From: Botryllus schlosseri
Taxonomy: Eukaryota
NCBI GenBank assembly: GCA_051294905.1
Contig: CM119380.1
Span: 1,860,001 to 1,924,000 of the forward strand
Direction of reading: 5' to 3'
DNA length: 64,000 nt
The translations under genes were made by a program, and so were the position numbers. This document shows positions 1,706 to 50,258 of the stretch, one piece after another. How positions within the stretch are numbered: the first letter of the stretch is position 1; each line of letters begins with the position of its first letter. The notes below the pieces were generated by a model, which saw only the letters and a list, made by a program, of their open reading frames with translations, did no database searches and was not told where the DNA came from.

Positions 1706-3247
1706 GTTCGCACTTGACCTGACTATACTTATCTGCAGAAATGGAAATGACTATAAATCGAGAGATTGCGTATGCCCAACTGGAAAGGTCAACGAGTTCG
1801 GACACATACGCAATTGTTATCTCATAGATCGGACAAGGAAATGTCATATTGAATCCAAAACATCATTCTGAAGAACTACGGATAGCAGCCTCGGAAATTC
1901 GGTCCCGGTACAGCTTGGGAGATTCTGGCCTTGAGGCTGGAGACTGTCACACGACACATACGGCTTACGGTCTATAGTGTCTATATGTCTGCTGCAAAAT
2001 CGCCTTCGGAAAATATATTACCGAATAAATACGTGGATGAAAGCCGAAAACTTGGTACACTGTTACATGAAATCATCGAGAAGTATAGCCTCATGACCGT
2101 TTTCGGTATGGTACACTGTCAAAATTAATACGAACAGATCAACGCCGAATTTTGCGTAATATTTACTGAGGAATCGGCTGATCAAGCGATCAGCTGTTAG
2201 CCGCCATCGAAAACGAAACAGCTATCGCGCTTGACAGGGGTTGTAATTGTGAGCAAATGGCCCGAAGGCCACCATTCCACGGTGAAATTGACATTGGAGA
2301 ATATAAAATAAAACTAAATATTTGAATGCAAACCGAGGATGTTAGTAAACTGTTTCATGATATCATCATCTCATCACCTATCTCAGTATAGAACACAGAT
2401 ACACCGGCTTTTGCGTGAAATCCGCAATGCGTTAGGTAGGCTAAGTGTCAGATCAGCGCACATCTCTACCATATTCGAACTTAATAACGAAATTGCTGCC
2501 CTAATCATTGAGTGTCAACCTTGAGACTTGGCACAGCGTTCGTTACTAAAATCAAGACATACCATGTAAAAGTTCATGACGGATCTAGCTAAGGAGCATC
2601 GTTAAAATCAATGGAGACCAATACCGTCTTTGCGTGAAATATGTTTGCGATGCATGACCGATCAGCACACACTCGACTTTGGAAACGGAATTACTACCCT
2701 AAACTTTGAGTAGAAACCCTGAAACTTAGGACAGTGTTAAATACCACCATCACGACATGACATACCAAGTTTCAAGAATTATCATGGTGTGAAACACCAT
2801 CAAAATCGACCTGTACCAGCAACGGTCGACTCAACGCATATCACGGTATCCGAGTTCAGATATAGATACGATTGTTACATCACACCTTAGGGGCGAGCAA
2901 GCATATTTGCCCCGGTTGCTCGGCCATTTTACGAATAGGAGAGAGTAAAGCAACGTTTCTTAATTGTGCGCAGCTTTGAGAGAATAGATAGTGAAAGCTT
3001 GTTATGAGCGCTACCGGGGCAAGCCCCGGCTAGGCATTCACAAAGCGAAAACACAGAAGAGAATTCGATTTTCGCGGAGACTTCGCTATGTATGGGCATT
3101 TGCAAGCGAAAGCACAAGAAGAACGCGGGTTTCGCTGTGATCTCGATATATATTGAGCGCTGTGCGTCTATAAATGGTTAAATTGTTATTGAACAGAATT
3201 TTAGGTGGGGCAATGCCCCAGTTGCCCTATAGGACGAGCCGCCACTG
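1013..3247 (-). mobile_element. hAT family A, copy 1 (other end lost)
   Basis: Terminus acgagccgccactg at 3234-3247; colinear with 17375-20479 from about position 1665 onward. Confidence 0.85.
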
Positions 3248-3253
3248 AGTACT

Positions 3254-3420
3254 CAGTGTTGGGATGACTCGAGTCATGACTTGACTCGAATCACTTTTGT
3301 AGTGGCGCCATAGAGCTACCACTACAACTTTGGTAAAATTACTTGACTTGACTTGACTCGGCGTATCAGAAATGTGGATTGACTCGTGACTCGGAGCAAA
3401 ATTTACGAGTCAATCTCTAG
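3254..3420. mobile_element. hAT MITE left-end fragment
   Basis: Starts cagtgttggg, followed by multiple gacttgactc/gactcg subterminal repeats; no matching right end seen. Confidence 0.5.
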
Positions 3421-6400
3421 TCATCTAGTAATCGGTTTTGATAAAAATCACTGTATCTTGCTTTCTTGCATATGTTCGGACCAATCATCCAATGATCGTG
3501 CGTTTAACTGAGCATCCATTATTCTCTCACAATTAAATTGACCACAAACGAATTGATCGAAGCTTGCAGCTCACGTTGTCGTAAACTAGTATAATAAAGT
3601 AATTTAATAGCAACATGTATAGCAACATATTTCTGTTCTCTGTTCATACCCCAACCAAACCTCTTGTTCTATTGAAATTGAATTCGAATATAGTTTACCG
3701 TATATAGTCCTGAACCATTGGCACAGGCTCAGTGAGTAAGTGGTTCAGTGAGTGAGAAAAGAAAAATTTGAATTTCAAAAAGTGCCTATGATATTTGGTC
3801 TCAAATCGCGAATGACTTACTTCTATCATAATTTCAGGTTCCACTCTCTAGTGGCCGTGCAATTTCACCGAACGAGCCGAAAATAACTAATTTTGCAATA
3901 TCTTGAAATACGCTTATGCTAGAAAGCTAGTTTTGGGCTTAAAAGCTGCGGAAGCAACATGTTTCTATATCACTTCCATAGAACTTTGTCTTGAAAATGT
4001 ACAGAAGAAAAGTTACAAGCAAATCAGTGATTTCCAGGCCGCCAATAAAATGTCGGTTGTTTTTACCAAGTTTGCAATGCCAATTTGCATGTTACAATTT
4101 GTTACATTGCGGCTTCAACAACAAAATCTTGTTTGGCGGGACTACGAGTTGATTTATATATCAACCTAGTATAATTTTGATGAGTAAAAGAGAATGATTG
4201 AACTTTCATCATATTGCATCATCACAAACCTTTGTCATTAACTTGGTGGAACGGGTATCTTCTTGTTCAACGCTACAACAAACGATATGCCTAGATTGTT
4301 CAAAAATTGAATCAGTTACAGTAAGTCAGCTATATAATTTATTTATACCTCATACCTGTATGTTTTGTTGAAAATGACGATTTTCATATCAATTGAGACA
4401 TTCGTAAACTGTTGCTTACAAGCTGCTGTACTCATCCTTGGAATATTCCGGAACTCTGATAATCAATCTTAAGTCTCCCAGTAGTAGTGATGATGACTCA
4501 TTTTGAATGTGTTCTGGTTTCTGGTGTATCCAAACCGATTTCTCCGTGTGCAGTATCATAGGCCGCAGGCTGTATGAATAGGCCGCTGTATTTTACTCTG
4601 CTATGTGTGTGAATTGAACTGATATTGTCTAGTATATGTACAGATTCAGAACTTCATCATGTTCGACTTATAGCAGATTGTGCTATATCATATGTACATT
4701 GTACAAGTAATTGACATAACGTTAACAAGAAAAATATCCAAACTCTGTTGTTGCTTGCAAGAAGTTGCTCAAAGTGTTTATGGTTTTCCTTCTGGAATAC
4801 TCCCAATCAAAAATATGCCGAGTGCCCAGTATGTCAAAAAGTGATGTCAAGCAGATCAATACCTACTCACTGTAGAACGATTCATGGCATTGAAACAGAA
4901 AATGTTGCAAACTGCGTCGATCACAAAAAAGGAATATATCTTGTCAGACTGAGCTCTCATGGGGGGATTCCCTACCCTGTTCACATCAGGAAAAATGTGT
5001 CTGAGTTCCATGCCGGAGAGTCGGTAGTGGAATGTGAAAGTAGTGGATGCATGGATTACATGCGGATTATGTGGAAAAGTGGCTTTCCTGCTGCACAGTG
5101 CAAACACCTATGTACAGTCCCAACAAACATTGTGTATCCCAGTAGTGTGGAGTTAACTGATGCCAGTTTGATGAATGGTTCGTCGAGTGGTTCTTACAAA
5201 ATTCTGAAGGATAGCAAAATAAATGGCTGTCGGGAATTGACACAAAAATCAAGGAATGCAGTATGTCCGTTCAAGCAATTCACCATGGTAGATACATTAT
5301 GATTTCTGTGTTTACCCTTGAAAAGCACTATTACTCCCGTCTTGGAAGGATATTAGTTACAGTGGACATGAAAGCGGGACGCCTATCTTGTCGTTGCTGT
5401 GATGCGAAGATGTATTGCATGCATAAGTGCATTAGTCTGTGGTACTTGTCCGAATAGGGACTTATCGACTGTTTTCATTGACAGGATATAGTCGTAGATG
5501 AAGTCGATGAACAGCAAGGAGAAATCTTTGCCGTATCTGATCAACACGATCAAGATCACATTGACCAGCAATTGGTATATCCGCCGAAGGAGTCTTCTGT
5601 ATTAAAGAAAATGTGCACCTACATTTCGTCAAAGAAGCGTATCCCAATTCGTCACAGATCAGGACATTGGCAAAGCACATTCCTAACGAACTTCATCCTA
5701 CCGAGACTGAATGTACAGAGTGTAACACAAAACTTTCAGGTTCTTTATTGATTGCCCGCAACGCAAAAATTCTCACAATGGATATGATTATTGAAAACAT
5801 TCGCGCGTTTTATCGAAAGTATCCAAACTGCAACATGTGTTATCGGTATAAAGAACATGATTTGGGAATTCACAACATCTCTGATGTCTTCCTGGTTTCT
5901 ATTGATGTATGTTGCTACATCAAAGACTCTCTCTGGCATTTTATCCCGATAGGAAGTACTGCTAAAGTGCTCTCTCTGTGTATTGGCAAAACTGTTCAAG
6001 AACACCAATTGGTTAATGCGTATCTGCATTTCGATACACTTTTTGACGCACACGATTACTCATTCAATTGTGATATTTGTGGACATTTCCCAACAATTGT
6101 GATCATGGACCTTTGTAAGAAGATTAATTTCCGGTGTAAGGCATCATACTTGAGCCCTTCTGAATTGGAGAAGGTGGATGAAGTGGATAGTGATGAATAT
6201 TGGGGAAAAGTTGAAAACAACATGGTATTACGCGGATTTCCGCAAAGATCAATTCCTGAATGGGAAATCACTCCAAGGCTATCACAGTGGTCACCCTTCG
6301 TTGGTAAAAACACAAGACGGGGACCAAATCTGTACTACACCGAGCACCGCAAGGTCTCGAAAATTGATGGGTCGTTGGAAGAAGACTGTCGTGAGATGAC

Positions 6401-7262
6401 AGAAGAGCGACTGGTGGAAGCTATGAATAATTTGAATGCAAAAGAATTTGCTCAACTGGTCAAATCAATTCTTGGGAAGGCCGCCTCAAAATTGACTTGC
6501 AAACTTGATAAATTGATTGCTGTCAGAGACGCGATTTCAACAAGTCATGAGACGTTCAAGAAAGCATTCTCCAAATTGGCGGGTTGCCCAGGTGGCTGGG
6601 CATCATGCATCTGTCCTCACGGTGTGGTATATGCGATGAAATTTGTTTTGAGGGCAGAGCACAAGAGATTTTGTCTATTTATTGTTGTCTTTCAAGCATA
6701 TTCCGAACATAGTAATTGTGGACATGGCAAATATGGTAGTTGCTCATGGCAACAAAACATGTCACGGAATGTTCTCTCCACACTCTGGGATGGTTTGTGC
6801 ACCGAGTGAAGAAAATATCGAGAATGCCTCTAAACAAAAATTGTCCATATCGATGCCTTGGATACTGAATCAAAGCAGTTCAAACCCAGACAGTCTATCC
6901 AGTGGCGAAGCACACCCAGTAAGTCGACAGAGCATCCATCTTTGCTTGTATGACCGCTTTCACGAAAGGAATGTGACCAAAAAGAAGGAGGTGTTGCGCC
7001 GCGTCTGTAATATAAAGCAGCTCAGGAACAACATCAATACCCAAGTGGCTGAACAATTGAATGGATATTATAAAAGATCTGATCGTTTTCTCAATCAAAT
7101 GATTCCAGTCAATCATGTATACCTCTTCAGGTCAATTATGGACTACTACAATATTGAATTGAATTCTGCTGTGAAGGCCAGATTTTCGGTCAACAACGAT
7201 ATGGAACTATATTACAATGAGACTGGAAGACTGCGAGCAAGACACTCTTCCTGGTCTGTTAA

Positions 7263-7780
7263 CCAGGATGAGAGATTCTCTCTTTCGAATAAAGGAGATG
7301 CATCTGAAGTCACTGCCGATTTGCCCGAAGTTGGATCCCTGGACGTTCCAATAAATATTGATCCAGACCAGGATGAGAGATTCTCTCTTTCGAATAAAGG
7401 AGATGCATTTGAAGTCACTGCCGATTTGCCCGAAGTTGGATCCCTGGACGTTCCAATAAATATTGATCCAGACCAGGATGAGAGATTCTCTCTTTCAAAT
7501 AAAGGAGATGCATCTGAAGTCACTGCCGATTTGCCCGAAGTTGGATCCCTGGACGTTCCAATAAATATTGATCCAGACCAGGATGAGAGATTCTCTCTTT
7601 CAAATAAAGGAGATGCATCTGAAGTCACTGCCGATTTGCCCGAAGTTGGATCCCTGGACGTTCCAATCAATATTGATCCAGACCAGGATGAGAGATTCTC
7701 TCTTTCAAATAAAGGAGATGCATCTGAAGTCACTGCCGATTTGCCCGATGCTGGATCTACGGACGTTTCAATAAATATTG
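7263..7780 (+). repeat. In-frame 105-bp coding minisatellite, ~5 copies (35-aa acidic unit)
   Basis: ccaggatgagag recurs at 7263, 7368, 7473, 7578, 7683; unit DERFSLSNKGDASEVTADLPEVGSLDVPINIDPDQ. Confidence 0.97.
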
Positions 7781-7829
7781 CTTCTTATAGTGAAGACAAT
7801 GTTAACGAAGAAGTGGATCCTGACACTTG

Positions 7830-8340
7830 GCTGGAGGAATTGGATTTAACTGCAGATGACCGACACATACTGTCAGGTGATGGATGGCTGTCCGACAGGC
7901 ATGTCAATGTGTCAATGAAATTGATGAAAAAAAAAACATCCAGACGTCGGAGGCTTACAGGACGTCATCATTGCTTCCGCCACTGGATACCAGCGTACAT
8001 CGGGTTTCTTTGTACAAATTATTAACCTCAGGCAAAGTCACTGGGTTACAATTTCCAATCGTTTTCCACTATGTGGAAATACTATAGTGTATGACTCATT
8101 GGTGACACAAAATTCAAAGGGAATTGTAGCATATGAACCAAAACTGGATGAAGCGGCTTTTCAGCTCCAGGAGAGTGACGATATTGCGAGTATTGAAATT
8201 GCAAAAGTTCAACAACAAGAGGGAGGCAGTGATTGAGGCCTATTTGCAATTGCTAATGCTGTATGCCTCTGTGCAGGCATATGTCCAACAACGATGAACT
8301 TTAAGATTGGCTTTATTGCAATCGCTGGAAAACATTGACA
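7830..8340 (+). pseudogene. Ulp1/Peptidase C48 SUMO-protease domain of the KDZ polyprotein
   Basis: GWLSDRHVN, then (after a frameshift in a poly-A run near 7930) QIINLRQSHWVTIS, VYDSL, VQQQEGGSD*GLFAIA. The catalytic Cys codon is TGA at 8234-8236. Confidence 0.85.
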
Positions 8341-8414
8341 TTGATATGTTACTCGAAACTGGCACCTGGACAGGCAATGATACAAATGCAACATCTTTAA
8401 CATCTTGGCGCCTT

Positions 8415-8550
8415 CGAATATATTGCACGTGCAAGAAAATGATGATGGGTCCCCCATGGCAGAATGTACGAGATGCAAAGACTGGTATCATTTTCGCTGT
8501 GTGTCAGGCAATGTCCATCATCCAAAATGGATATGCGACCTTTGCCTGAA
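8415..8550 (+). pseudogene. PHD finger of the KDZ polyprotein
   Basis: IYCTC (one frame) + ENDDGSPMAECTRCKDWYHFRCV..WICDLC (next frame): C4HC3 pattern with a 1-nt frameshift. Confidence 0.85.
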
Positions 8551-8779
8551 AAAGGTGGTACGATCGGTGACGCCCGCGTTTCGGAAGGAATACGAAGAAA
8601 TTCAGACTGTAGGCGAGTTGTTAAACAACTCAACAGACAATCGAGTTACCGAACTTTACAAGGCTGTGCAAAAGATGACACCGAAATTGTCATTGCCAAG
8701 AGATGATGCTATTTCGGTGGGAATTTTGTCTCTGGAGGAATACTGGGAAAACATTGATAACCACAGAAAAAGGGATTTA

Positions 8780-9061
8780 ATGGGAATCAATCATCGGCAT
8801 CCCAGGTTTCAGATATGTTTTCTCATTGTGTTCTCGGAATCTTGCAGTGACACATCTACTTTACTCTCCACATTCTTGCATGAATTAGCACATGTCATAC
8901 AGTATGAGGAGAAGGTTTATGGAGCGTCTCACGGCAGTGGGTTCAAAAAAATTGGCAGACGCGTCATCAAATTGGTGTCTCGAAATAAACATCTCCTCCC
9001 AAAAGCTTTTGCAAAAGTAGAAATTAACGAAAGGTTAGTGTTAACTGCAAAATGCTCGTAA
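8780..9061 (+). pseudogene. SprT-like zinc metalloprotease domain ending the KDZ polyprotein
   Basis: TFLHELAHVIQYEEKVYGASHGSGFKKI: HExxH plus a downstream HG..F motif, in the same open frame as the PHD C-terminal half. Confidence 0.7.
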
Positions 9062-9099
9062 TTTTCCAAACATGATTGTCACTTACCGTAATACATTTC

Positions 9100-9900
9100 C
9101 TAGAAGTCGCATTGCTCTTGATTTCATTTTATGTTTTGATCTGCATTGTCTGAGGTGTTTCATAACCTCCAGAGTCATATCAGCTGCTGTGACATTAAAA
9201 TCGTGCATTTTTATTCCTGTGCCCACTGTAAATAACTTATTTGCCTTCGTGGTTTCTGACCTTTCGTCCATTATTTCTGACTTTTTGCTTCCTTGAATTT
9301 TCCAGGAAGAACTTGCTAACCTACATTGTTGCATTGCTCTTGATTTGATATTTTAACCTGCACTGTTTGAAGTGTTTTATAACCTCCATAGTCATATCAG
9401 CTGCTGAAACATTGAATTCGTGTATTTTTGGGCCTGTACCCAAGTTTTTTTGAAGAAATTTCCTAACCTGCAACGTTTCAAGTGTTTCATAACCATATGA
9501 TTCTTATCTCATGCCGTAACATTAAATTCGTGCATTTCTGTTCCTGTGCCCACTGTAAATAACTTATCTTCATTCGTTCTTTCTGACCTTTTGTCTCGTT
9601 AATTTTTTAGTAAGAACTTGCTAACCTGCATTGTTGCATTGCTCTTGATTTGATTTTATATTTTAACCTGCACTGTTTGAAGTGTTTTATAACCTCCAGA
9701 GTCATATCAGCTGCTGAAACATTGAATTCGTGCATTTCTGGGCCTGTACCCAAGAATTGTTAGGAAAAAGTTGCTAACCTGCAACGTTTCAAGTGTTTCG
9801 TAACCACATGATTCTTATCACATGCCGTAATATCGAAGTCGTGCATTTCTTTTCCTGTGCCCACTGTAAATAACTTATCTTCATGTGTTGTTTCTGACGT
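9100..9900. repeat. Diverged tandem repeats (~110-bp subunits, ~300-bp period) 3' of the KDZ ORF
   Basis: gcattgctcttgattt...cataacctccagagtcatatcagctgctg and cctgtgcccactgtaaataacttat each recur three times. Confidence 0.8.
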
Positions 9901-10592
9901 TTCGTTAAATTTTCTAAGAAAAACCTGCTTCTTGAGCGAGTCGGTTGTGTGCATGTGCATTTGTGCAGTCAGATAGTAGATCGAACTTGTAGGAATCATA
10001 TCGATGGGTCTATGCAGGAGAACTAATCAGTTGTTCAAATCTTCCTCTTGTTGCATCTTGCTTAGAGCAACATCGGACTTGGTCAGTAAGAGCAACATCG
10101 GACTTGGTCAGTAAGAGTTACAAACTACTGGTACTATTTTATAGATTTTGTTTACATTATCCACTTACTCGAGTATAGTTCATTATAAACCACTTCTGCT
10201 TGAATGCATTTTTCGCAAAATGGTTCACTGCTTTACGTTTCCGAAAGTAGAAGGTAGTTATGCAGTGACTCTGCATCACTTTTATCAGCAAAATTGTCAC
10301 CAGCACCTCGTGGAATAGCTCCCGTATTTGTGGTATATGAAATGGTGTTCAAAAACGATACCTGCTTATGGGGCTGAATGGTAGCAGCGTGTGATGGCTT
10401 TCGTTGGAAATGCCGCTCCCCATAAGTAGACCGCAGCAAATTTCGACATCGTATTATGTTATAGCAATCTTGTCAAATAATATGCCGCATTTGAGAAATT
10501 CTATATTGCTTGAGACAGAAGCCTCGTCGTCTCATCGCTTATAAGGCCAAAAATGATAAAGACAATTAATAGTGAACGAATGTATATAAGGC

Positions 10593-10790
10593 CAGGGGCG
10601 GCCAACCCGTTGCCCGCGAGTAAATTTTGAGTGGCCCGCGAGATAATTCCCGAAATTAGCTGTAATATCCAATAATTAATATTGCATGTAATTTATACCG
10701 TTTATATGTATCGGCTCGACAAATTATGTAATTTTTTTGTGAATTTGCAGGGTGAATTTGATTAGATTGCCCGCGAAATTTGGGTTGTTA
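10593..10790. mobile_element. hAT MITE left-end fragment
   Basis: caggggcggccaac start with gcccgcga subterminal repeats; no right end found. Confidence 0.55.
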
Positions 10791-11384
10791 GTAACTTGAA
10801 GCATTAGTTCCGACGCATTGGCGTAGTTCGGGGCTCGCCTTGTTTTTCGTAGATCTTCGTGTATGATCATAAAGTATAATATTTCGTGGTAGATTCATTT
10901 GACCTGATATTTTTCTAAGTACTAAGCGCGATTTATTGTCACTCAATTTCTTGTTTTTAGCACCCCCTCCAGAAAATTTACCGAATTGAGTCTGATATAC
11001 TCGCAATTATGAGAGAACGTGTCGTCTGTGTCGACTTCGCATCTGCACTTGCAATTATAGACGTGTAAGCAGGAATCTTCGATATTTATATGTGTGAGCC
11101 CCAAATATTCCTGTCTTTGTCAAATGAGTCCAGCGGCAAGCACAGGCGACCCGCAATAAATGCAAGGGACATTAGTATTGGCCGAACTCATGTATTAACT
11201 TTGCAACTCCAATTTAACAATACCGATCTTGATTCCGGATTTACAATTCCGGAAATACAATTTTAAAGCTAGCAGGTCAACGGAACCACCCATAAATATA
11301 GCCGTCCAAGTCTGAAATCTGAAAATCGGCATAGTTCCGAATGATCGCTCGATAAAATTCCCAATATCATGGTCAATTATTCAT

Positions 11385-14300
11385 TCGGACATGGTGTCTT
11401 GGGCGTGTTAGGCCTGTGTTGACACTAGGACATCGTGTCTGGAGCGTGTTCGGACATCATGTCCAGGGTGTGTTCGGCCTGTGTTGCCAATCAGACATCG
11501 TGTCTGGGGCGTGTTCGGTCTGTGTTGTCATTCAGACATGGTGTCTTGGGCGTGTTCGGCCTGTGTTGATACTCGGACATCGTGTCTGGCGCGTGTTCGG
11601 ATATTATGTCTGGGTCGAGATCGGCCATTCAAACATGGTGTCTGGGTTGTGTCCGGACTGAGTTGACACTCGGACATTGTGTCTGCGGCGAGTTCGGACA
11701 TCATGTCTGGGACGTTTTCGGACTGGATGTGGGATGTGTGTTCGGACTGGGTTACCACTGGGGAATCGTGCCTGGTACTACAACTGACCTCATAGTGAAT
11801 ATATAGCAACTATCCTCATTTCAAACATGACTATCCTCATTTCAAACATGAGACTAACCTTATTTCAAACATGACTATCCTTATATCAAACATGACTATC
11901 CTTATTTCCAAAATGATTATCCTTATTTCGAACACGAGACTGACCTTATTTCAAACATGACTAACCTTATTAACATCGTGTCTGGGGGGTGTTGGGACTG
12001 TGTTGCCAATCGCACATCGTGTCTGGGGCATGTTCCGGCATCATATCTGGGTTGTGTTCGGCCTGTGCTGCCATTCAGACATTATATTATGTCTGGGGCG
12101 TGTCGGCCTGTGTTGACACTCGGACATCGTGTCTGCGGCGAGTTCGGACATCATGTCTGGGGCGTGTTCGGCCTGAGCTATTGCCATTCAAACATAGTGT
12201 CTGGGGCGTGATCGGTCTGTGTTGCCATTCGGACATGGTGTCTTGGGCGTGTTCGGCCTGTGTTGATACTCGGACATCGTGTCTGAGGCGTGTTTGGACA
12301 TCATGTCTGGGGTGTGTTCGGCCTGTGCTGCCAATCAGACATGGTGTCTTGGGCGTGTTCGGCCTGTGTTGATACTCGGACATCGTGTCTGGCGCGTGTT
12401 TGGACATCATGTCTGGGGTGTGTTCGGCCTGTGCTGTCAATCGGACATCATGTCTGGGGCGTGTTCGGCCATTCAAACATGGTATCTCGGATGTGTTCAG
12501 ACTGAGTTGACACTCGGACATTGTGTCTGGGGCGTGCTCGGTCTGTGTTGTCATTCAGACATGGTGTCTTGGGCGAGTTATGCCTGTATTGACACTCGGA
12601 CATCGTGTCTGGCGCGTGTTTGGACATCATGTCTGGGGTGTGTTCGGCCTGTGCTGTCAATCGGACATCATGTCTGGGGCATGTTCGGCCATTCAAATGT
12701 GGTGTCTGGGTTGTGTTCGGACTGAGTTGACACTCGGATATCGTGTCTGGGGCGTGTTCGGTCTGTGTTGCCAGTCGAGCATGATGTCTTGGGCGTGTTC
12801 GGCCTATGTTGATACTCGGACATCGTTTCTGGGGCGTGTTTGGACATCATGTATGGGGTGTGTTTGGCCTGTGTTGCCACTCGGACATGGTCTCTTGGGC
12901 GTGTTCGGCCTGTGTTGATACCCGGACATCGTGTCTGGGGCGTGTTTGTACATCATGTCTGGGCAGTGTTCGGCCTGTGCTGCCAATCGGACATCGTGTC
13001 TGGGGCATGTTCGGCCATTCAAACATGGTGTCTGGGTTGTTTTCGGATCTGAGTTGACACTAGGACATCGTGTCTGGGGCGTGTTCGGTCTGTGTTGCCA
13101 TTCAGACATGGTGTCTTGGGCGAGTTAGGCCTGTATTGACACTCGGACATCGTGTCTGGCGCATGTTTGGACATCATGTCAGGGGTGTGTTCGGCCTGTG
13201 CTGCCAATCGGACATCGTGTCTGGGGCGTGTTTGGACATTATGTCTGGGGTGTGTTCGGCCTGTGCTGCCAATGGGACATCGTGTCTGGGGTGTGTTCTG
13301 ACATCATGTCTGGGATGTGTTCGGACTGGGTTACCACTGGGAAGTCGTGCCTGGTACTACAACTGACCTCATAGTGAATATATAGCAACTATCCTCATTT
13401 CAAACATGAGTATTCTCATTTCTAACATGACTATCCTCATTTAAAACATGAGACTATCCTTATATCAAATATGACTATCCTTATTTCTAATATGATTACC
13501 CTTATTTCAAACACGAGACTGACCTTATTTCAAACATGACTAACCTTATTAACATCGTGTCTGGGGGGTGTTGGGACTGTGTTGCCAATCGCACATCGTG
13601 TCTGGGGCATGTTCCGACATCATATCTGGGTTGTGTTCGGCCTGTGCTGCCATTCAGACATTATGTCTGGGGCGTGTCGGCCTGTGTTGACACTCGGACA
13701 TCGTGTCTGCGGCGAGTTCGGAATCGGACATCATGTCTGGGGCGTGTTCGGCCTGTGCTATTGCCATTCAAACATGGTGTCTGGGGCGTGCTCGGTCTGT
13801 GTTGTCATTCAGACATGGTGTCTTGGGCGAGTAAGGCCTGTATTGACACTCGGACATCGTGTCTGGCGCGTGTTTGGACATCATGTCAGGGGTGTGTTCG
13901 GCCTGTGCTGCCAATCGGACATCGTGTCTGGGGCGTGTTTGGACATCATGTCTGGGGTGTGTTCGGCCTGTGCTGTCAATCGGACATCGTGTCTGGGGCA
14001 TGTTCGGCCCTTCAAACATCGTGTCTGGGTTGTGTTCGGACTGAGTTGACACTCGGATATCGTGTCTTGGGCGTGTTCGGTCTGTGTTGCCATTCGAGCA
14101 TGATGTCTTGGGCGTGTTCGGCCTATATTGATACTCGGACATCGTTTCTGGGGCGTGTTTGGACATCATGTCTGGGGTGTGTTCAGCCTGTGTTGCCACT
14201 CGGACATGGTCTCTTGGGCGTGTTCGGCCTGTGTTGATACCCGGACATCGTGTCTGGGGCGTGTTTGGACATCATGTCTGGGCAGTGTTCGGCCTGTGCT

Positions 14301-16060
14301 GCCAATCGGACATCGTGTCTGGGGCATGTTCGGCCATTCAAACATGGTGTCTGGGTTGTTTTCGGATCTGAGTTGACACTAGGACATCGTGTCTGGGGCG
14401 TGTTCGGTCTGTGTTGCCATTCAGACATGGTGTCTTGGGCGAGTTAGGCCTGTATTGACACTCGGACATCGTGTCTGGCGCGTGTTTGGACATCATGTCA
14501 GGGGTGTGTTCGGCCTGTGCTGCCAATCGGACATCGTGTCTGGGGCGTGTTTGGACATTATGTCTGGGGTGTGTTCGGCCTGTGCTGCCAATGGGACATC
14601 GTGTCTGGGGTGTGTTCTGACATCATGTCTGGGATGTGTTCGGACTGGGTTACCACTGGGAAGTCGTGCCTGGTACTACAACTGACCTCATAGTGAATAT
14701 ATAGCAACTATCCTCATTTCAAACATGAGTATTCTCATTTCTAACATGACTATCCTCATTTAAAACATGAGACTATCCTTATATCAAATATGACTATCCT
14801 TATTTCTAATATGATTACCCTTATTTCAAACACGAGACTGACCTTATTTCAAACATGACTAACCTTATTAACATCGTGTCTGGGGGGTGTTGGGACTGTG
14901 TTGCCAATCGCACATCGTGTCTGGGGCATGTTCCGACATCATATCTGGGTTGTGTTCGGCCTGTGCTGCCATTCAGACATTATGTCTGGGGCGTGTCGGC
15001 CTGTGTTGACACTCGGACATCGTGTCTGCGGCGAGTTCGGAATCGGACATCATGTCTGGGGCGTGTTCGGCCTGTGCTATTGCCATTCAAACATGGTGTC
15101 TGGGGCGTGCTCGGTCTGTGTTGTCATTCAGACATGGTGTCTTGGGCGAGTAAGGCCTGTATTGACACTCGGACATCGTGTCTGGCGCGTGTTTGGACAT
15201 CATGTCAGGGGTGTGTTCGGCCTGTGCTGCCAATCGGACATCGTGTCTGGGGCGTGTTTGGACATCATGTCTGGGGTGTGTTCGGCCTGTGCTGTCAATC
15301 GGACATCGTGTCTGTGGCATGTTCGGCCCTTCAAACATCGTGTCTGGGTTGTGTTCGGACTGAGTTGACACTCGGATATCGTGTCTTGGGCGTGTTCGGT
15401 CTGTGTTGCCATTCGAGCATGATGTCTTGGGCGTGTTCGGCCTATATTGATGCTCGGACATCGTTTCTGGGGCGTGTTTGGACATCATGTCTGGGGTGTG
15501 TTCAGCCTGTGTCGCCACTCGGACATGGTCTCTTGGGCGTGTTCGGCCTGTGTTGATACCCGGACATCGTGTCTGGGGCGTGTTTGGACATCATGTCTGG
15601 GCAGTGTTCGGCCTGTGCTGCCAATCGGACATCGTGTCTGGGGCATGTTCGGCCATTCAAACATGGTGTCTGGGTTGTTTTCGGATCTGAGTTGACACTA
15701 GGACATCGTGTCTGGGGCGTGTTCGGTCTGTGTTGCCATTCAGACATGGTGTCTTGGGCGAGTTAGGCCTGTATTGACACTCGGACATCGTGTCTGGCGC
15801 GTGTTTGGACATCATGTCAGGGGTGTGTTCGGCCTGTGCTGCCAATCGGACATCTTGTCTGGGGCGTGTTTGGACATCATGTCTGGGGTGTGTTCGGCCT
15901 GTGCTGCCAATGGGACATCGTGTCTGGGGTGTGTTCTGACTGGGTTACCACTGGGAAGTCGTGCCTGGTACTGCAACTGACGTTATAGTGAATATAGCGA
16001 CTATCCTCATTTCAAACATGAGACTAACCTCATTTCAAACAAAGTTGACCTTATTTCAAA
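11385..16060. repeat. GC-rich complex satellite with higher-order blocks
   Basis: Motifs cggacatcgtgtctggggcgtgtt and cggcctgtgttgccaat are repeated throughout. The block marker gggttaccactggg occurs at 11749, 13328, 14647 and 15942, each followed by AT-rich ctatcctYatttcaaacatga repeats. Confidence 0.95.
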
Positions 16061-17177
16061 CCAATCGATCCAACCTTCCTCAAATGATACGCATGTAGGC
16101 TATATTCGAAAGCATGTCGAATAAGGTATTTGTATTGAAATAAACTCGAATAAGGTATTTGTATTGAAATAAACTCGAATATCTTCGGTCGACACTCGTA
16201 AAGAGAATCATTTCTGCTCACCTGATATATCAGGCAAAACGTACCGGGATTCCGATCCGGCTAGCAGTAACTGCAGAGTTTGGCCAAGAAAGTGTAGTGG
16301 AGGACTCAAGTGGAGCAATAATTGCCAGAAAAGAAAGTATGAACGGGAAAATAGAACTGTCGCTTGAAACGTCATTACGAAACCAAACAACAGAACTATT
16401 ATAATTGCTGACGTCTGAAACTGACGATCACCCATTCACCCCTGACGAGACCAAAGGGAAGACTGAAGTGGTCCTGGCGGAATTTCGGCAGAATATTTGT
16501 GATCACGTGAAACAATATTTTCGCGAACGCAGAATATTAACCCTCAACCGATGTACGGCAAATGTCATATTTCAGACTGGATGCGAAAGTGTACCTGACC
16601 TATAATTTAGATAATTAACACATCATTGGAAAGAGCGTTCAAATTACTTTATTTAAAATCGATTTCTAGATTCCAGATCGTCCTGCTTCATTCTCTCGGT
16701 GAACGTCGTAGCGATAGGACGTGCCTTCAGCGCGATCATTACGTTTGCGAATTAGTCCGGAGAAAGCCTTTGTAATTAGTTCTAGGGGCATTCGTCTCGC
16801 CTTACAGCGATACTGTTTGTCCATTGCTATAGTTGTAGCCAGACGTTCTAAGATGAGCGGATCTGGCGGGCATAAGCGCCCAGCTAGTGAGGAAGCCGAA
16901 GGTCCTGCAACAAAAGGTAGGAGTAGCGGATCTGTTATCCTCTGCCCGGATGACACCTCGGTAGTTATTTCAGGAATCGCTAAACCTCTGCGACGGTACA
17001 ATCCGATTACTATCAATCGCAGTTTAGTGCGAGTCATAGGAGGTTCGTACAAGGGGATTAAGGTCCTTCCCTCGGGAAACCTTTGTGTAGTTTGTTCTAA
17101 CTCAAATCAGGTGACGAAACTCTTGGCGTGCACCGATCTTGGTGAGGGGAAAATTAAAATTGAAATCAAGGCAGAGC

Positions 17178-32747: not shown

Positions 32748-34943
32748 TTGACTGACACTGCGATCAAATCGAAATTCGAAGTCGCTGTGACGTATGCTGA
32801 TATAGTGTCTGTTTGCCCCAACCCATCGGAGAAAATCATTCAAAATATCAATGAAATCATGACAACTGACACCAAACCAGGATGGTCAACATACGGTATT
32901 GTCAATGCTTTTGTAATCCAGTGTGCGCTCAACGGAAATTCTCAGTTAAATCAAAGACATTTTGGGTATCTGACAACGGACATGACTCATTTCATACTTT
33001 GTGGAAATAAACCTCGAGCAGTTCCAGACATTATCCTTGATCACAATCGGCTCTTACGCGAGGTCGTACTTTTACCAATTCTTATTCGTCGGAATTTCAA
33101 TCATTTTTCTCTTCTCTGTTTTCAAGAAAAGAATAAAATAATCACATTTTACGATTCTGCTGGTTGTCGTGATACGGAGGAGCAACACGAGATTTTATCG
33201 TCAATTACAGAATAATGAGAATACCTATCTGGTATTTCTAGAATAGATCTGAACAGCATGATGAAGGAATTTTTCGGCGACTTCCTTCAAACCGACTCTT
33301 CTTGTGGTGTTTTTGCATGTATGGCAGCGTGGAGCATATGTTTGCAAGACAAGCACCGTACACATTTGCAAACTGACTTCCGTCATAAAATCATTTGGGA
33401 GCTACGTCAAGACTGCCTGACATCATCCCACGTTGTGCGAAATGCTGAGGTTGAATGTGGCATTCTTACCCAGATACCTGGACTCGAAAATCTAGGAAAT
33501 ACATGCTGGTCCAATTCTGTTATGCTAGGAAATACATGCTGGTCCAATTCTGTTATGCAAGCATACTCTCATGTCATACGGCAGAGATTGGGGCCACTGG
33601 GTGAGAGTAGGCAAATTCACGGGGAAATCGCAAATATACTTATCCCCTTGACAAACTTGAAGGCGGTTGCACGTGACGTATTAATGAATACTGTTAGAAT
33701 TGCATGTGAGAGAACTAAACTGGAGTTTGGTAAGCAGCACAATTGTCTTGAGTTCTATTCACTATCTTCCTTGCCACAAGTATTGGAAGATATTCGTTGG
33801 AAGCACGAATTGAAATACGAGCGGATCATCCACTGCAACGACTGTCAAACGAATGGATCAACAGTACACCGAGAAAAAATCTTCAACGTGAATTGCGGAG
33901 TTGCATCGATAGCAGAAGCATTTCAGATTTCACAACTCAAATGTGAAAAATGTGATTCCGCGACAAATACTAATGTCATGCTCACTGAAATTCCGAATCC
34001 AGTGCGCCTCAACCGTGCGAATTCTATGGGTAAAAAGATGGAAAATACTGTCTTTGTCAACCGGAACCTCGACATTCAGGGACCTGATCAAGATTGGATC
34101 GGATATTCGCTCAAGGCTGTGGTTGCACACATCGGATCGGATGGAGACGGACACAATATCGCATATTCAATTCATTCGAAATGCACGGTACGGCTATGCA
34201 ACGACGAACTTGTAGAATTTGTGGATTCGAACGCAGCTTTCAATGCCATGTCAAGGAATGGATACCTCTTTATTTATCTCAGAAAGATGAAGCGAAGATT
34301 ACCGCTGCAAAAATTCTCCAAGCAAGAATATTTCATGAAAAGTCTGCCATTGAAAATGATGGATATCAATGAAGGAACTAAAGCAATCGGTGACACAATA
34401 TTTCAGGACATTGTAAATATTTGTCATCTTACATTACACGAGTCGCAAAAGGACGTCCGTAGTCAGCGACATTCCCTTTTTCTCGAAAACAAATACGCTG
34501 AATTGCAGAAAATGATCGTACCTGTTGGACAAAATGACAGCGAAGAAATCAAAGTCATATTCCAATATATCAAAAACAAGACCCGCGTCTTACATGCGAG
34601 ATGGATCAGACATTTGAACACAGGAACAGAATACGTCGCATACAACATATTTTCGCGAATAATTTTCAACAAGGCTGTGGTGCATGAGGACATTGAGCTC
34701 ATGAAGAAATTAGCACCAACGCACAGCAGCGACAAGTATTTCAAGTTGGTTGTGTTGCAAGAAGTGGCTTTGATGTTTCTGTCCATTACTGAGAAGAGAA
34801 CATACGAAGAAGTTTTGGAGAATCTGAATGTACCATATAAATGGCGAAAAAAAGCAATTACAAGTTACGTTTCTACGGCTTTCGCATCGTATTTTGAATA
34901 TACTTTTTTGTTGAAGAACTATCGAATTTCATTTCATTGGTAG
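32748..34943 (+). pseudogene. Ulp1/C48 SUMO protease followed by a USP/C19 ubiquitin-specific protease and a helical C-terminal region
   Basis: ORFs 32748-33215 and 33258-34943 share a frame (TAA TGA between them). C48: NHFSLL, FYDS, QTDSSCGVF. USP: GLENLGNTCWSNSVMQ, QHNCLEF, LKAVVAHIG..DGHNIAY, CNDELV. Confidence 0.8.
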
Positions 34944-36430: not shown

Positions 36431-36599
36431 AAAACTCCTCCGAGAAACCCCGGGACACCTTGAGACCATGCATATCTAACTCGAGATTACAGTTGATTAA
36501 CCCCCATAGCCTTGGCATCGTTTGTGAGTAATCGACTTTGTGAGTAATCGACAGAATACCGCGGCGGTGTCATCATTTTTACTTCACTTTCGAAGCGAT

Positions 36600-37950
36600 G
36601 AGCGGAAAATCTTTGGTCCCAAGGTGTGTCCACGACTCTTCATTTGCGATGGGGGCTTCGTGATCATGAAACCAATCTTGTCCAATTATATGGATGAGAC
36701 TCTGCAATCTTACATCAACCGATGCCATCGCGTTGTTACTTGATTAGCAACAGAAAGCGACCTGAAAAAGCCATTCCTTCATTTATGTGCGAGTCATCTC
36801 ATGAAAAACTTCAAATCGTTGTGCTCGAAAAATAAGAAGAGTTTCGGGACTTGATGTACATTTTCGGTTTGCTGGTGGCACACCAGCTCGTAATTTTATT
36901 GCATACAACCAACCAAACAATGGCAGAAAACTCGATGCGTTTCTTTCTTGACAGCATATATCATGATGAGGAATTTAGATTTCATTCTAGCAACATTGCT
37001 GAAGATTTGGTCGGGCGATGTTGGAGGTAGAATCTGCTGGGTCGTCAGGTGAAAATCTTTTTCATATGCCTGAGATGTTCAATTCCTTCAAAGATAATTT
37101 TTTCACCGAAATTGCCGTTGATTACGAGTCTTCTCACCGGTGATTTGAGTAGATATGGAAACTCGAGCTCGTATGGGAAATATGGAAAGTTTTACAAATC
37201 GCTGAAAGGTCGCAAATATCAAAACTTGACTCGCAACTGTAGGACTGCTGGTATAATGGAAAATTCGAATCAGGAGCTGAAGCGTTGTCGTTTGCAAGGA
37301 CGCCGATTTTCTGGACTAGACGAGTTCGCATGTAATCGTCTATGATGATTTGCATAAGTCCTTGATTCGTGAGTACCATGACAATCTTCAATCATTTCCA
37401 CCCGTCAAAAGCAGAAGGCGCGCCAGTGTTCCACCTGAAGATGTTGAGGTTTGGAAAAAAATCACAGAAATGAGAATCCTAATAAAAATATTGGGAAATA
37501 TTTCCAGCCACCCCGGAAACCTCTGCGCGGTGTGACAAGCTGTAAGAGTAAAGCACTTGTCGGTAATGGTGATCTGGACAATCACGAGACTGGTGATCTC
37601 GACGATCACGGCCGAGAAAGGCTGGTGACGACTCATCCCAATATTCCAGCTCAACAACAGCATAACCACGGAGATACGAAAAACACCCTCACTGACATTG
37701 GAGTCACTTCAGACAAAACCAGGAACCTCCTCCCATTCAAATTCACAGGTATATATAGACATTCCCCTCCAGCACTCATAGTACGCAGTAAGTTAGCGAT
37801 TTCGAAATGATACAATCTCCCATTTCAGACATTGCTTCGCTGTGGACCTCGAGGATGGAAAAAAACCGGATCGAAGCTGTTGTGAACCACGCGCCACTCT
37901 TCAAGTCTGATCTAATGACTCTCAAAGGTCCTGGCTTAATGATGCGGTAT
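36600..37950 (+). pseudogene. Second, diverged NOF-FB-like MULE transposase relic, followed by the start of a Ulp1-like domain
   Basis: PRLFICDGG, ETLQSYINRC, FLHLCASHLMKNFK, LLTGDLSRYG, RTAGIMENSNQELK; near 37890-37950 LFKSDLMTLKGPG-LNDAV. The hAT copy at 38004 follows shortly after. Confidence 0.6.
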
Positions 37951-43598: not shown

Positions 43599-45599
43599 CC
43601 AGACGGACTCTGACTTTCATATCATATTTTTCAATCAACTGTGCAGTGTGCAATCAATCCCAGCCTTCTAACAATCATTTCACTCGAGCCATGCACTCTT
43701 GACCGGTTCAAATTCTTTAAAATTGATCTCAACCAGTTGTAAACACTTGCGGAATCAGTGATACTCTCTAATGTCCTTACTTTCTATTTTAGCGCTAGAT
43801 TCAGTCCCTTCACCACAGCCTCCAATTCTGCGACGTTGTGAGCACCATCATCCTGCTTTCTCATCCAGGCCGCATCTTCCACTACTTGGCCATCCACCAT
43901 TAGGCAACACCCATATTGCTAGGATACTAGCATCACACCAAAGTTGCACCCTTCCTCCAGCAGGAGCTTGCCAAATTCCCCTCACTTGATCGTTCTCTTT
44001 CACCCTTGCAAGGATTTCGCCAGCTACTTGTAACACATGATATGATACTGTTTCTTCCCATGCCACTTCATTAGCAAGGCGCTTTACGTAGCTGGAAGCA
44101 ATCATCAGCCAGCCTGCCACAGGGTAGTGACCGATATGTTCACCAAACATAGAAAAGAGCTGGCTCTTTGGCCATTCTTCAGCCGGCTCTGGCAGGATTC
44201 CATCTCTGGCCCATTCATACGATCCCGCAGCCGTCGCAGTGACTCTCAGTCCTAATACCCGTGTATCGTTCAACGGGACAGGCTCCTTTGCTCTTAGTCC
44301 ATACCGTAATAAGTGCCTCCTCACCGTTTCCACATCCACGATACTGGCATCAACAAATTTTTCATCGATATAATGATCTGTTCCACATTTTATCTCTTGA
44401 CTCTGCGACAATACCACCGACAGGATCCTTGACATTTCTTTTGGCGCGACATTGAGGCTAAATCCCATACGCGTCATGACGTATTTCTTCTCGCCATGCT
44501 GCACGATTTGAAATTTGTACAAGCGCTCTGAAACGTGGATTTGTAGATATGCTTTGTGCAGATCTAACATATATGCATGTGTGCCTTTCTCTCAGTTTTT
44601 CCTGGCACACCAGAATTATCTGCACCGGGAGAACTCATCACATGACTATTCACCTCGCGGTAATCCATAACTGGCCGCACCTTTCTTGATTTGTTTGGGT
44701 GTTTTACTGCCATCAGAGGAATCAGACCCTTTATTGGCGTCCATGAACGTCTGGGTTGTATTCTTCCAATCAGCAATTTTGAATCCATGATTCACTTCAT
44801 GATGGAACTCCTCTTGGCACTCAGGTGGAATCGCGTACCCTGGACAACGGTTTGACAAGGTTGGCTCTTGATTCGTCCATTTCCACTCTACAATCCACTT
44901 TGAGCTACCAAAAATAGCGTTGAAATCTTCATCATCGATAACCAGCTTCTCCACTTCTTCAATCAACTTATCATCTTCTTTACTCAACTTCTCGACTTCT
45001 ACTTCAATCGACTTCTCAACTTCTTCTTCACTCAGCTTCTCAATTTCTTCCTGATAACTCACTCCCACAGCAGCATATGTGGGAAGTGCACCAAACCGTA
45101 CTCGAAGATCTGGACCAACAAACACCCCATCCATCCCCTCGATCACATCCGTCCCCAGAATCACCCTTGCATTACAAACCAGAGGAGTTGCTGTTAAAAC
45201 TTCCATACAGAGGTCAACTTCGTCAATTTCCAGTTTGACTGTCATTTCACCATGACTAAATCTTAATTCGCCATTCAACATTTCCACAACTAGCTTTGGT
45301 CCCCTCACTGGCACGCCCAATTGCTTACACACAACTTCTCGCACCACAGACCTCTGGCAACCACTATCAAAGAGAGCTTCTACAGATATTCCAAATATTT
45401 TTACAGAAATGATTGGCAGCAACTTTTTCCTCACTGTCGGTGGCTGGGTTCTGACCGTTCCCCATTGCCGTTTCCTGATTGATTGGTGGTGTAGCACCGT
45501 TCTTGCAGAACAGAGCTAGATGGGTGGTGTCAACAGCACGGACTGTTGGCCAAGAACTACATCCCGTGCAATATATGTAGCGGAGTGACGGCTCTAGTC

Positions 45600-48749: not shown

Positions 48750-50258
48750 CTAATATCTAAAAGCATTGATGCCCTCTGTGTTTCTGCTAATCCATTCGGC
48801 GATCATGGTTTCCATATTAATCTTGTCTACCATCTCAGAATGGACATTCAAGATTGAGCATGAGTTAAGACGGTGCTGTGACATTGTCGATCGCAGGTAC
48901 GTCTTCAATCGACGCAATGTGCTAACTGTACGCTCAGCTTCACACGTCGTACAGGGAAGTGACAAATTAATGCGCGCATGCCTAGCTAGATTCGGGAATA
49001 CATCAACCAGTGTACGATTGTTCGCAAATACTTTAAAGCAATCCACTGGACACTTTGCGTACACATGAGTGACAATGAACTGATCAAGTTCCCGTTCCAA
49101 ATCTTTCAGGCAAATATCTCCTTCATAAAATTCGCAAACAGTGCTAATGTCATTTTTGTCAGCACGAAAACTCAAAATCGGCTCAAGCTGTATCGCTATT
49201 CCAATGTCTTCAGAGTCATATCTACTCAAAAGAATTTCACTACTCTTTGAAAAGACATCATGGTAAGTATGACGGAAGAAATCATCCACAGAATGTTGTT
49301 GGTCAGAGTTTTGTGAGTGTATTCGGCTCCGTGCGCGCGGAACGGAAGGTAATCGTAATTTTAATTTTCGTGCTTCGCCAGATACCTTGTAAAAAATTGC
49401 ACTGGCATTCTCAGTTGATGCCCCGTCACCAATGAGGACGCGAGACAGATTAGAAATCAATTGCCTGGCCAAAAATAGTGAAATCGTGGAACTTTGTATT
49501 GCTTTGTGAACAGAGTGGAAAGTGTTTACCAGCCGTTGAAGTAACCGCAGATGAAAGTAGGTAGACAACTTTTCCAATTGCATCAAGTTAACAAGATTGA
49601 TTTGATGCCCCATACAATAAACGTACGTAGCTTTTGGAGCAACTCGCTTAATTCTAGCCTGTACTCCATTAATGCGTCTTTTCATATTTGCTGCCCCGTC
49701 ATAAGCCTGGCCACAACATCTTTCTAAGCTCAATCCCAAAGAGGCCAAACAATCCTGAATCGTGTTACTTAGTGTTTCAGAATCACATTTCGGTGTGTTA
49801 CAAAATCCTAAAAACACCTCTTTTGTAACCCAATCGCTATCCACATAGCGAGCGCAGAGCGAAACCGGCTCCTTTATTGTGATGTCTGATGTTTCATCAG
49901 CGATTATAGAATAATATCCTGAACCAGATTTTTCAATATCTTTGACAATTTGTCGCAGAATTGTGTGCGAGGCAAGGTCCAAAATTTCGTTAGGAATATC
50001 ATGACTTAGCCATTTCTTCCTTGTACTTTCATCCATCCATTTTTGTACGTAGTCCACATGTTTACCAAGTAATTTCAATATTTGCACGAGATTAGAATTT
50101 TCATCACTGTGGCCGCGAATGGGAAGGCCCTTTCGCCCACACACTATAACGGAGTCAAATATAGCACGCAAAGCCTTGGCATTTTCTTTTGCACGCGGCA
50201 TTTTCTTTTGCACGCGATGCAGATGGCCCTTTAAGATTTGCAATGACACATGCACCAC
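48750..50258 (-). pseudogene. hAT transposase core (DUF4371, DDE, C-terminal dimerisation domain), probably internally deleted
   Basis: GLPIRGH, SIIADETSD, GQAYDGAANM, YVYCMGHQINL, TTCEAERTVSTLRRLKTYLRSTM. The region after CxxH appears shortened. Confidence 0.9.

Follow-up and report, generated by a model that had tools for sequence, protein, structure and literature searches.

A decayed Zisupton/KDZ-type transposon of Botryllus schlosseri whose transposase ends in Ulp1, PHD and predicted SprT-like domains

The DNA analysed here, called the window throughout, is a stretch of 64,000 nucleotides from Botryllus schlosseri (assembly GCA_051294905.1, contig CM119380.1, positions 1,860,001 to 1,924,000 of the forward strand). 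Its positions 4805-16081 hold a decayed copy, rearranged on its 5' side, of the right part of a very large DNA transposon of Zisupton/KDZ type with foldback arms. The transposase of this element ends in an Ulp1/C48 cysteine protease domain, a PHD finger and a SprT-like zinc metalloprotease module, and our comparison of copies revealed that this C48-PHD-SprT cassette is a native, selected part of the transposase lineage and no local accident. Overall, the explanation that we consider best is a Zisupton/KDZ transposon with such a native, selected cassette, which may work on chromatin; to this explanation we assign a probability of about 0.7. The parts of the window copy are as follows.

4805-9061, + strand: decayed transposase reading frame with six frameshifts and three stops, its 5' end missing.
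4811-5251, + strand: N-terminal C2HC/C2H2-type finger (ECPVCQK...HCRTIH), aligning to residues 209-354 of the related protein P0004.
5269-5457, + strand: SWIM-like CxCxnCxH finger (CRCC...CMHKC), recognised by its motif and without a Pfam match.
5682-5915, + strand: CxC4 cysteine cluster of KDZ transposases (PF18717), Pfam score 20.1 bits.
5916-7230, + strand: Zisupton/KDZ-type core with a SAP-like insert, assigned by homology and predicted fold, with a frame change at 6655.
7262-7780, + strand: acidic 35-amino-acid (aa) repeats, 4.9 tandem copies of a 105-bp unit that are 97% alike (tandem-repeat comparison).
7808-8300, + strand: Ulp1/C48 cysteine protease domain with a +1 frameshift at 7927, a TGA at 8234-8236 and a 14-nt deletion at 8298.
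8418-8545, + strand: C4HC3 PHD finger (PF00628, 23.4 bits), split by a 1-nt deletion at 8439.
8558-9058, + strand: open piece with the SprT-like zinc metalloprotease module (PF10263, 25.9 bits), its stop codon at 9059-9061.
8879-8893 and 8930-8935, + strand: SprT-like active site, HELAH and the HG that holds the third His, reading HELAH...HGSGF.
9062-11380, + strand: 3' non-coding part of the element, ~2.3 kb, common to the copies C2, C17, C11, C3 and C12.
11381-16051, no strand assigned: G-rich tandem array forming the right foldback arm, ~4.7 kb (copy comparison).
16052-16081, - strand: element terminus, end A, with a conserved 23-nt end and the 7-nt tip GAGGAAG.

The list of open reading frames (ORFs) and a three-frame translation revealed a + strand coding path that hops between frames across all modules; its first open piece runs from 4748, and homology to the C2 copy, which lies on another contig, begins at 4805. 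A preliminary description of this DNA had read KDZ core, acidic repeats, C48, PHD and zincin in that order on the + strand, and all of these parts were present in that order. When compared against the open frame of the C11 copy, the window copy showed frameshifts at 5268 (-4), 5641 (-1), 6655 (-2), 7927 (+1), 8298 (-14) and 8439 (-1), and stops at 5455, 5479 and 8234, the last being the TGA that replaces the codon of the catalytic Cys of Ulp1. The window copy is a dead transposon copy, and the Cys to TGA change and the several frameshifts to which its death had been ascribed were both found. The extent first given, 4748-9061, does contain the modules; however, the frame is also truncated at its 5' end, where ~410 nt of coding sequence known from the C2 copy are missing, and the element continues beyond 9061 to 16081. 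In addition, window positions 3750-4655 are inverted relative to the C2 copy.

The unity of the protein was established from copies on other contigs, which were recovered when the window's own genome (495 Mb) was queried with the PHD and SprT piece. The C11 copy carries all domains in the same order within a single open frame of 1341 aa (CxC4 37.1 bits, C48 22.8 bits), in which the Ulp1 Cys is intact in GGNDCG, and the C2 copy has a complete frame of ~1500 aa broken by two frameshifts only. A DNA search with the C11 frame matched ~10 loci; seven of the eight copies reaching C48 run through SprT, and the eighth ends inside C48. Decay marks most copies, which are scattered over unrelated loci, and the C11 frame is ~10% diverged from the others. 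The four modules belong to one protein, and the common domain order that the preliminary description had proposed to look for in further copies and in related species was indeed encountered, in these copies as well as in uninterrupted proteins from other assemblies and the sea-cucumber protein P0015. The only fully open frame found in the genome is that of C11, and it begins at an internal Met (L014:1695, C11:16816694), exactly at the start of similarity to other copies. Upstream of this frame, which lies between inverted arms, is an inverted piece of the element interior, indicating that the gene was cut off from its 5' end by an inversion within the element; consequently, the C11 frame encodes an incomplete transposase. 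Among the copies examined in the genome, none was both autonomous and fully intact.

Beyond this genome, four uninterrupted proteins of 1492-1658 aa (P0004, P0005, P0008 and P0196) all end in C48-PHD-SprT, and the core was ~44% identical to that of uninterrupted proteins from European Nucleotide Archive (ENA) assemblies. The Apostichopus japonicus protein P0015, with 38% identity in the core, has the same ending, and so do P0035 and P0042. P0196 was found as one further relative by a word-indexed protein search with the P0005 cassette, and the corresponding search with the PHD and SprT part of C11 returned BYE1-type PHD fingers only. P0042, which is filed in NCBI as a protein of a Sedimenticola metagenome-assembled genome, belongs to this eukaryotic transposase family, with core, C48, PHD and SprT; probably, DNA of a eukaryote was binned there with that of a bacterium. 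A profile search of 1.84 billion representatives yielded 160 proteins, mostly fragments.

The element to which these proteins belong extends far beyond its reading frame. Subterminal 110/311-bp repeats occur at 9274-9902 within the 3' non-coding part, and the G-rich array that follows is found on both sides of the C2 copy in inverted orientation, the upstream one 16 kb away. The best-preserved copy, C2, measures ~28.5 kb; it has a single long reading frame, for one protein of ~1500 aa without introns, and the outer edges of its arrays share a precise terminus. This 23-nt terminus, GTTGGWTCGATTKGTTTGAAATA, occurs 208 times in the genome (103 forward and 105 reverse; control 0), mostly as facing pairs 1.8-16 kb apart, corresponding to ~100 elements. 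Perfect 8-bp direct repeats flank 12 of 12 pairs examined, including the ORF-bearing C2 element, beyond 7 further nt; these 7-nt tips are end-specific in the 12 pairs, with GAGGAAG at one end and CTACAGG at the other. Since the termini are identical and the 8-bp duplications perfect, the family has been mobile recently, and it is mobile DNA with ~100 members, mostly non-autonomous. Only one end lies inside the window, and the next 8 nt past end A, AAATGATA (16082-16089), are a candidate target-site duplication. The ends were found by comparing copies, and an inverted-repeat search within window positions 2000-12000 gave chance-level pairs only. End A stands to the right of the reading frame in the window copy and to its left in the C2 copy, a switch that could be explained by inversion of the interior via recombination between the inverted arms.

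The module at the extreme C-terminus was compared with SprT-family proteases by profile and by structure. Matches to PF10263 (cut-off 25.6 bits) reached or exceeded the cut-off in the window piece (25.9), P0004 (26.9), P0008 (31.9) and P0035 (30.3), and were below it in the C11 copy (22.0), P0005 (21.2) and P0015 (25.2). Across seven aligned modules with pairwise identities of 17-26%, no substitution occurs at the H, E and H of HExxH or at the H of HG; HExxH...HG is also present in P0042, P0196 and P0073, and is kept in 104 of the 150 best profile matches. Moreover, a profile of the seven-module alignment matched the active-site helix of human SPRTN (E 0.002), followed by Schizosaccharomyces pombe Wss1. 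The AlphaFold2 model of the module (predicted local distance difference test, pLDDT, 86.8) had human SPRTN 6mdw as its closest solved structure (VIA-align Z 9.9, root-mean-square deviation 2.7 A over 110 aa; Foldseek probability 1.0), the next being Wss1 5xbn (Z 7.2) and generic zincins (Z <=6.7), and the top ten matches among Swiss-Prot models were GCNA and SPRTN. The aligned range in 6mdw ends at residue 156, and the zinc-binding DNA subdomain and the SHP/PIP/UBZ tail of SPRTN are absent, the proteins ending ~35 aa past the HG motif. Judged by profile and predicted fold, the module is a SprT-family domain and no SPRTN orthologue, in agreement with the SprT-like zincin of the preliminary description, for which profile and structure searches had been advised. 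It looks functional, with its metal and catalytic residues intact and signs of purifying selection.

The two domains that precede this module were likewise recognised across the family. The Ulp1/C48 model PF02902 (cut-off 20.7 bits) scored 22.8 bits in C11 and 24-30 bits in relatives, and the HW and DCG(L/V)(F/Y) motifs of C48 are conserved in the family. For the PHD finger, PF00628 (cut-off 24 bits) gave 23.4 bits in the window, 20.2 in C11 and 24.3-25.9 in P0047, P0053 and P0068; the C4HC3 pattern was seen in seven of the eight family members checked, and the nearest sequence matches of the finger were BYE1-type PHD fingers.

Selection on each part was estimated as the ratio of nonsynonymous to synonymous divergence (Ka/Ks) by comparing the codons of the C11 frame with those of the C2 and window copies, with Fisher p values. 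Ka/Ks was 0.29-0.30 for SprT (p 5e-6), 0.29 for C48 (p 1e-4), 0.30-0.36 for PHD (p 0.04) and 0.23-0.35 for the core (p 1.5e-9). The acidic repeats gave 0.55-0.89 (p 0.35), with no detectable constraint. These codon comparisons indicate that the SprT part is under purifying selection and is maintained like the transposase itself.

As regards the core, its kinship with KDZ/Zisupton is suggested by the CxC4 cluster, homology to fish proteins, the fold of the core model and the 8-bp duplication, which Bohne and colleagues (in 2012) are said to have given as the length of the Zisupton target duplication. The CxC4 model PF18717 (cut-off 26.9 bits) scored 37.1 bits in C11, 30-41 in relatives and 20.1 in the decayed window piece. 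Fish proteins, Xiphophorus among them, share 32-35% identity with the core (E 1e-93 to 1e-115), the reference Zisupton protein not being among those compared. An AlphaFold2 model of the core (pLDDT 85) matched AlphaFold clusters of HMGXB3-like, SAP-domain and 'CxC5 ... KDZ domain-containing' proteins (E 1e-50 to 1e-10), and D166, D371 and E481, candidates for the acidic triad of a DDE-type (RNase H-like) core, are near-invariant, together with a DxxH motif, in the family alignment of 36 sequences. The label KDZ given in the preliminary description is therefore upheld by CxC4, by the fish Zisupton-like homologues and by fold, but not by the Pfam KDZ core model, which found no match in the core of C11, P0004 or two fish relatives, even at E <=10. 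HMMER filters drop most weak matches, and the Pfam KDZ model is built mainly on fungal sequences. Foldseek comparison of the core with solved structures gave nothing significant, and weak integrase and transposase rows only.

The distribution of the SprT module among relatives is uneven. It is lacking in all 30 relatives examined from fish and hemichordates (32-36% identity), in which CxC4 is present and C48 and SAP are variably so. In the sister KDZ lineage represented by P0010 and P0012, whose C-terminal 260 aa were inspected, C48-PHD is followed by a tail of ~150 aa without HExxH, which is either a replaced domain or an inactivated SprT remnant, and the protease is thus dispensable for some relatives. 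In a tree of the core, the SprT-bearing rows all fall in one of two main groups and three changes in SprT presence are needed; a single gain does not follow from it, in part since the gene models behind several rows are truncated, among them some rows labelled 'absent'.

The same SprT module was also detected in P0073, a protein of 2086 aa encoded by one ORF on an ENA contig (L016:6001-12261), together with a PHD finger, a centre resembling Mutator-like elements (MULEs), a USP/UCH domain and C48. Its central part was placed with MULE transposases by a language-model search, which is a lead only, and a Pfam search assigned a family neither to the middle of the protein nor to the transposase core of the Botryllus element. 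Since a MULE-like part and the same SprT module are combined in P0073, the cassette may move between transposase superfamilies. P0073 is, furthermore, weakly similar to a second element of the window, whose ORF of 561 aa (33258-34943) carries a UCH/USP domain (48.7 bits). This second element also spans 36483-36815.

Transposases with C-terminal proteases of the ubiquitin-like-modifier type have precedents. Ulp1, OTU or Ulp1 plus PHD are known at the C-terminus of Ginger1 and Mutator-like transposases (Bao, Kapitonov and Jurka 2010, PMC2836005), and Ulp1, OTU and USP domains were proposed earlier as a link between transposition and the ubiquitin/SUMO system (PMC2836005). Those proteins resemble ours as cut-and-paste transposases with such a protease, sometimes then a PHD finger; however, their cores are unrelated (integrase-like and Mutator), no metalloprotease is described in PMC2836005, and the cassette studied here extends into a SprT domain. 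P0073, with USP, C48 and SprT, suggests that the extended cassette also exists outside KDZ. Zisupton/KDZ transposons share with the Botryllus element the CxC-type cluster before the core (PF18717) and the SWIM-like finger, and, as described for the group (partly in PMC12062965), Ulp1 in some members and an 8-bp target duplication, as here. In contrast to them, the Botryllus element adds a C-terminal PHD finger and a SprT-type metalloprotease, and it has kilobase-long tandem-repeat foldback arms with end-specific 7-nt tips. To SPRTN, Wss1 and GCNA (ACRC) the module is alike in its HExxH...HG(x)(x)F active site and in its best sequence and fold matches, whereas it is only 15-22% identical and stands at the extreme C-terminus of a transposase; the tie to SUMO and ubiquitin runs through binding motifs in those proteases and through the fusion with Ulp1 here, and with USP too in P0073.

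With regard to novelty, our literature search returned no paper joining KDZ with SprT, nor SprT-like domains with Ulp1 and a transposon, and no mention of proteases in KDZ was found in Kojima 2025. The founding KDZ/Zisupton papers lay outside this search, which is hence no proof of novelty; with that exception, the earlier statement that no SprT-bearing KDZ element was known to have been described agrees with the literature searched. DNA transposases bearing Ulp1, alone or with PHD, are already known (Zisupton, Ginger1 and MULEs), and only the SprT addition is new.

SPRTN, Wss1 and GCNA are DNA-activated proteases under ubiquitin and SUMO control, and SUMO is central to heterochromatin-based transposon silencing; by this reasoning, the cassette would act in cis on chromatin. 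The PHD finger, in which the aromatic residues of H3K4me3 readers are kept, would anchor the protein to histone H3 tails, Ulp1 would take SUMO off neighbouring proteins, and the SprT domain, if DNA-activated like SPRTN, Wss1 and GCNA, would cut tightly DNA-bound proteins at the donor or target site. The targets would probably be host repressors that depend on SUMO, histones, or the highly stable complex that the transposase itself forms after the reaction. Taken as a whole, this reading, in which the cassette would work beside the transposase on chromatin by reading histones, removing SUMO and cutting proteins, is drawn by analogy with those proteases, and we hold it tentatively, at somewhat less than even odds. 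The wider proposal goes further: a portable cassette of modifier protease, histone reader and SPRTN-like protease on unrelated transposases (Zisupton/KDZ, and MULE-like with USP) would provide DNA-activated protein clearing, either of silencing factors and histones or of the transposase-DNA complex. We regard this as conceivable but doubtful.

Several points weigh against a chromatin-directed cassette on a Zisupton/KDZ transposon. The core has neither a match to the Pfam KDZ core model nor a solved-structure match in Foldseek; the C11 frame, without its 5' end, is an incomplete transposase; the module is devoid of the zinc-binding DNA subdomain of SPRTN; and the sister lineage of P0010 and P0012 dispenses with the protease. 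DDE transposases, moreover, are not covalently joined to DNA during their reaction, so that their chemistry does not obviously yield the textbook SprT substrate. Finally, in four RNA-seq runs, of each of which 6-13% was read, no read fell on the open frame of C11, which is no evidence of germline silence. The few RNA reads at the C11 locus all fell on a short repeat beyond the coding part (L014:6333-6365) and then continued into dissimilar sequence; other copies of this repeat are their probable source.

Among the alternatives, the one that survives best is self-processing only, in which SprT (or Ulp1) would cut the transposase itself, freeing the core or limiting its lifetime, with no host substrate. 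Self-cleavage of SPRTN on DNA is established, all modules are made as one protein, and the long unconstrained acidic linker between core and cassette would offer an accessible cleavage region. However, this linker varies in length and sequence among copies and has no conserved cleavage-site motif, and the co-travelling histone reader and SUMO protease, with USP too in P0073, are left unexplained. Self-processing appears unlikely as the only role.

It is improbable that the SprT-like module is a non-cutting structural or binding domain, for example a SUMO/ubiquitin-binding or DNA-binding adaptor. Pfam scores near the cut-off (22-32 bits), the missing zinc-binding subdomain of SPRTN and the sister-lineage tail without HExxH at the same place would be in line with such a role; against it stand the invariance of the four catalytic and metal residues at 17-26% identity, the retention of HExxH...HG in 104 of the 150 best profile matches and the SprT Ka/Ks of 0.29.

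If the frames were a host gene family domesticated from a KDZ transposase, and no mobile element, they would have a parallel in HMGXB3, which is regarded as such a gene; the core fold matches HMGXB3-like proteins, and the C11 frame being open over 1341 codons despite 10% divergence, and Ka/Ks values below 1, would also suit a host gene. Nevertheless, the frames lie inside elements with inverted arms, conserved termini and 8-bp duplications, most copies are decayed and at unrelated loci, the 5' end of C11 was lost via internal inversion and no RNA reads were seen in the four runs. We consider domestication very improbable and rejected it on the termini, the inverted arms, the duplications and the decayed, scattered copies. 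The view that the SprT piece is foreign to the transposase, placed there by chance or through a single capture of a host exon in this genome, draws on the different frames of the window pieces and on the SprT-like piece being by itself an independent open frame of 218 aa ending in the SprT-like domain, but its probability is close to nil and it was rejected, given the one open frame across the domains in C11, in proteins of other assemblies and in the sea cucumber, the same order in seven of eight copies, and frame changes in the window that are small indels relative to the open copy.

Elsewhere in the window, other transposon frames were identified at 926-1705, 43848-45497 and 48750-50258, all on the - strand, with hAT-like features (DUF4371 and a hAT dimerisation domain) and a retroelement aspartyl protease. 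Among the window ORFs of at least 180 aa, none was clearly a host gene.

Little is known of how eukaryotic cut-and-paste transposases gain entry to chromatin, evade SUMO-dependent silencing and are cleared from DNA once the reaction is over. In this context, a Zisupton/KDZ transposase whose single polypeptide unites, under selection, a SUMO protease, a histone reader and an SPRTN/GCNA-type protease offers a testable link between transposition and the clearing of proteins from DNA, and it widens the contexts of SprT-type proteases beyond repair genes. The open sequences, together with ~100 recently mobile elements with defined ends, are material for such testing. If the proposal of a portable cassette is true, it would be a eukaryotic, self-encoded counterpart of the action of ClpX on phage Mu, and it would prompt one to ask whether genes have passed between transposons and GCNA, the germline protease.

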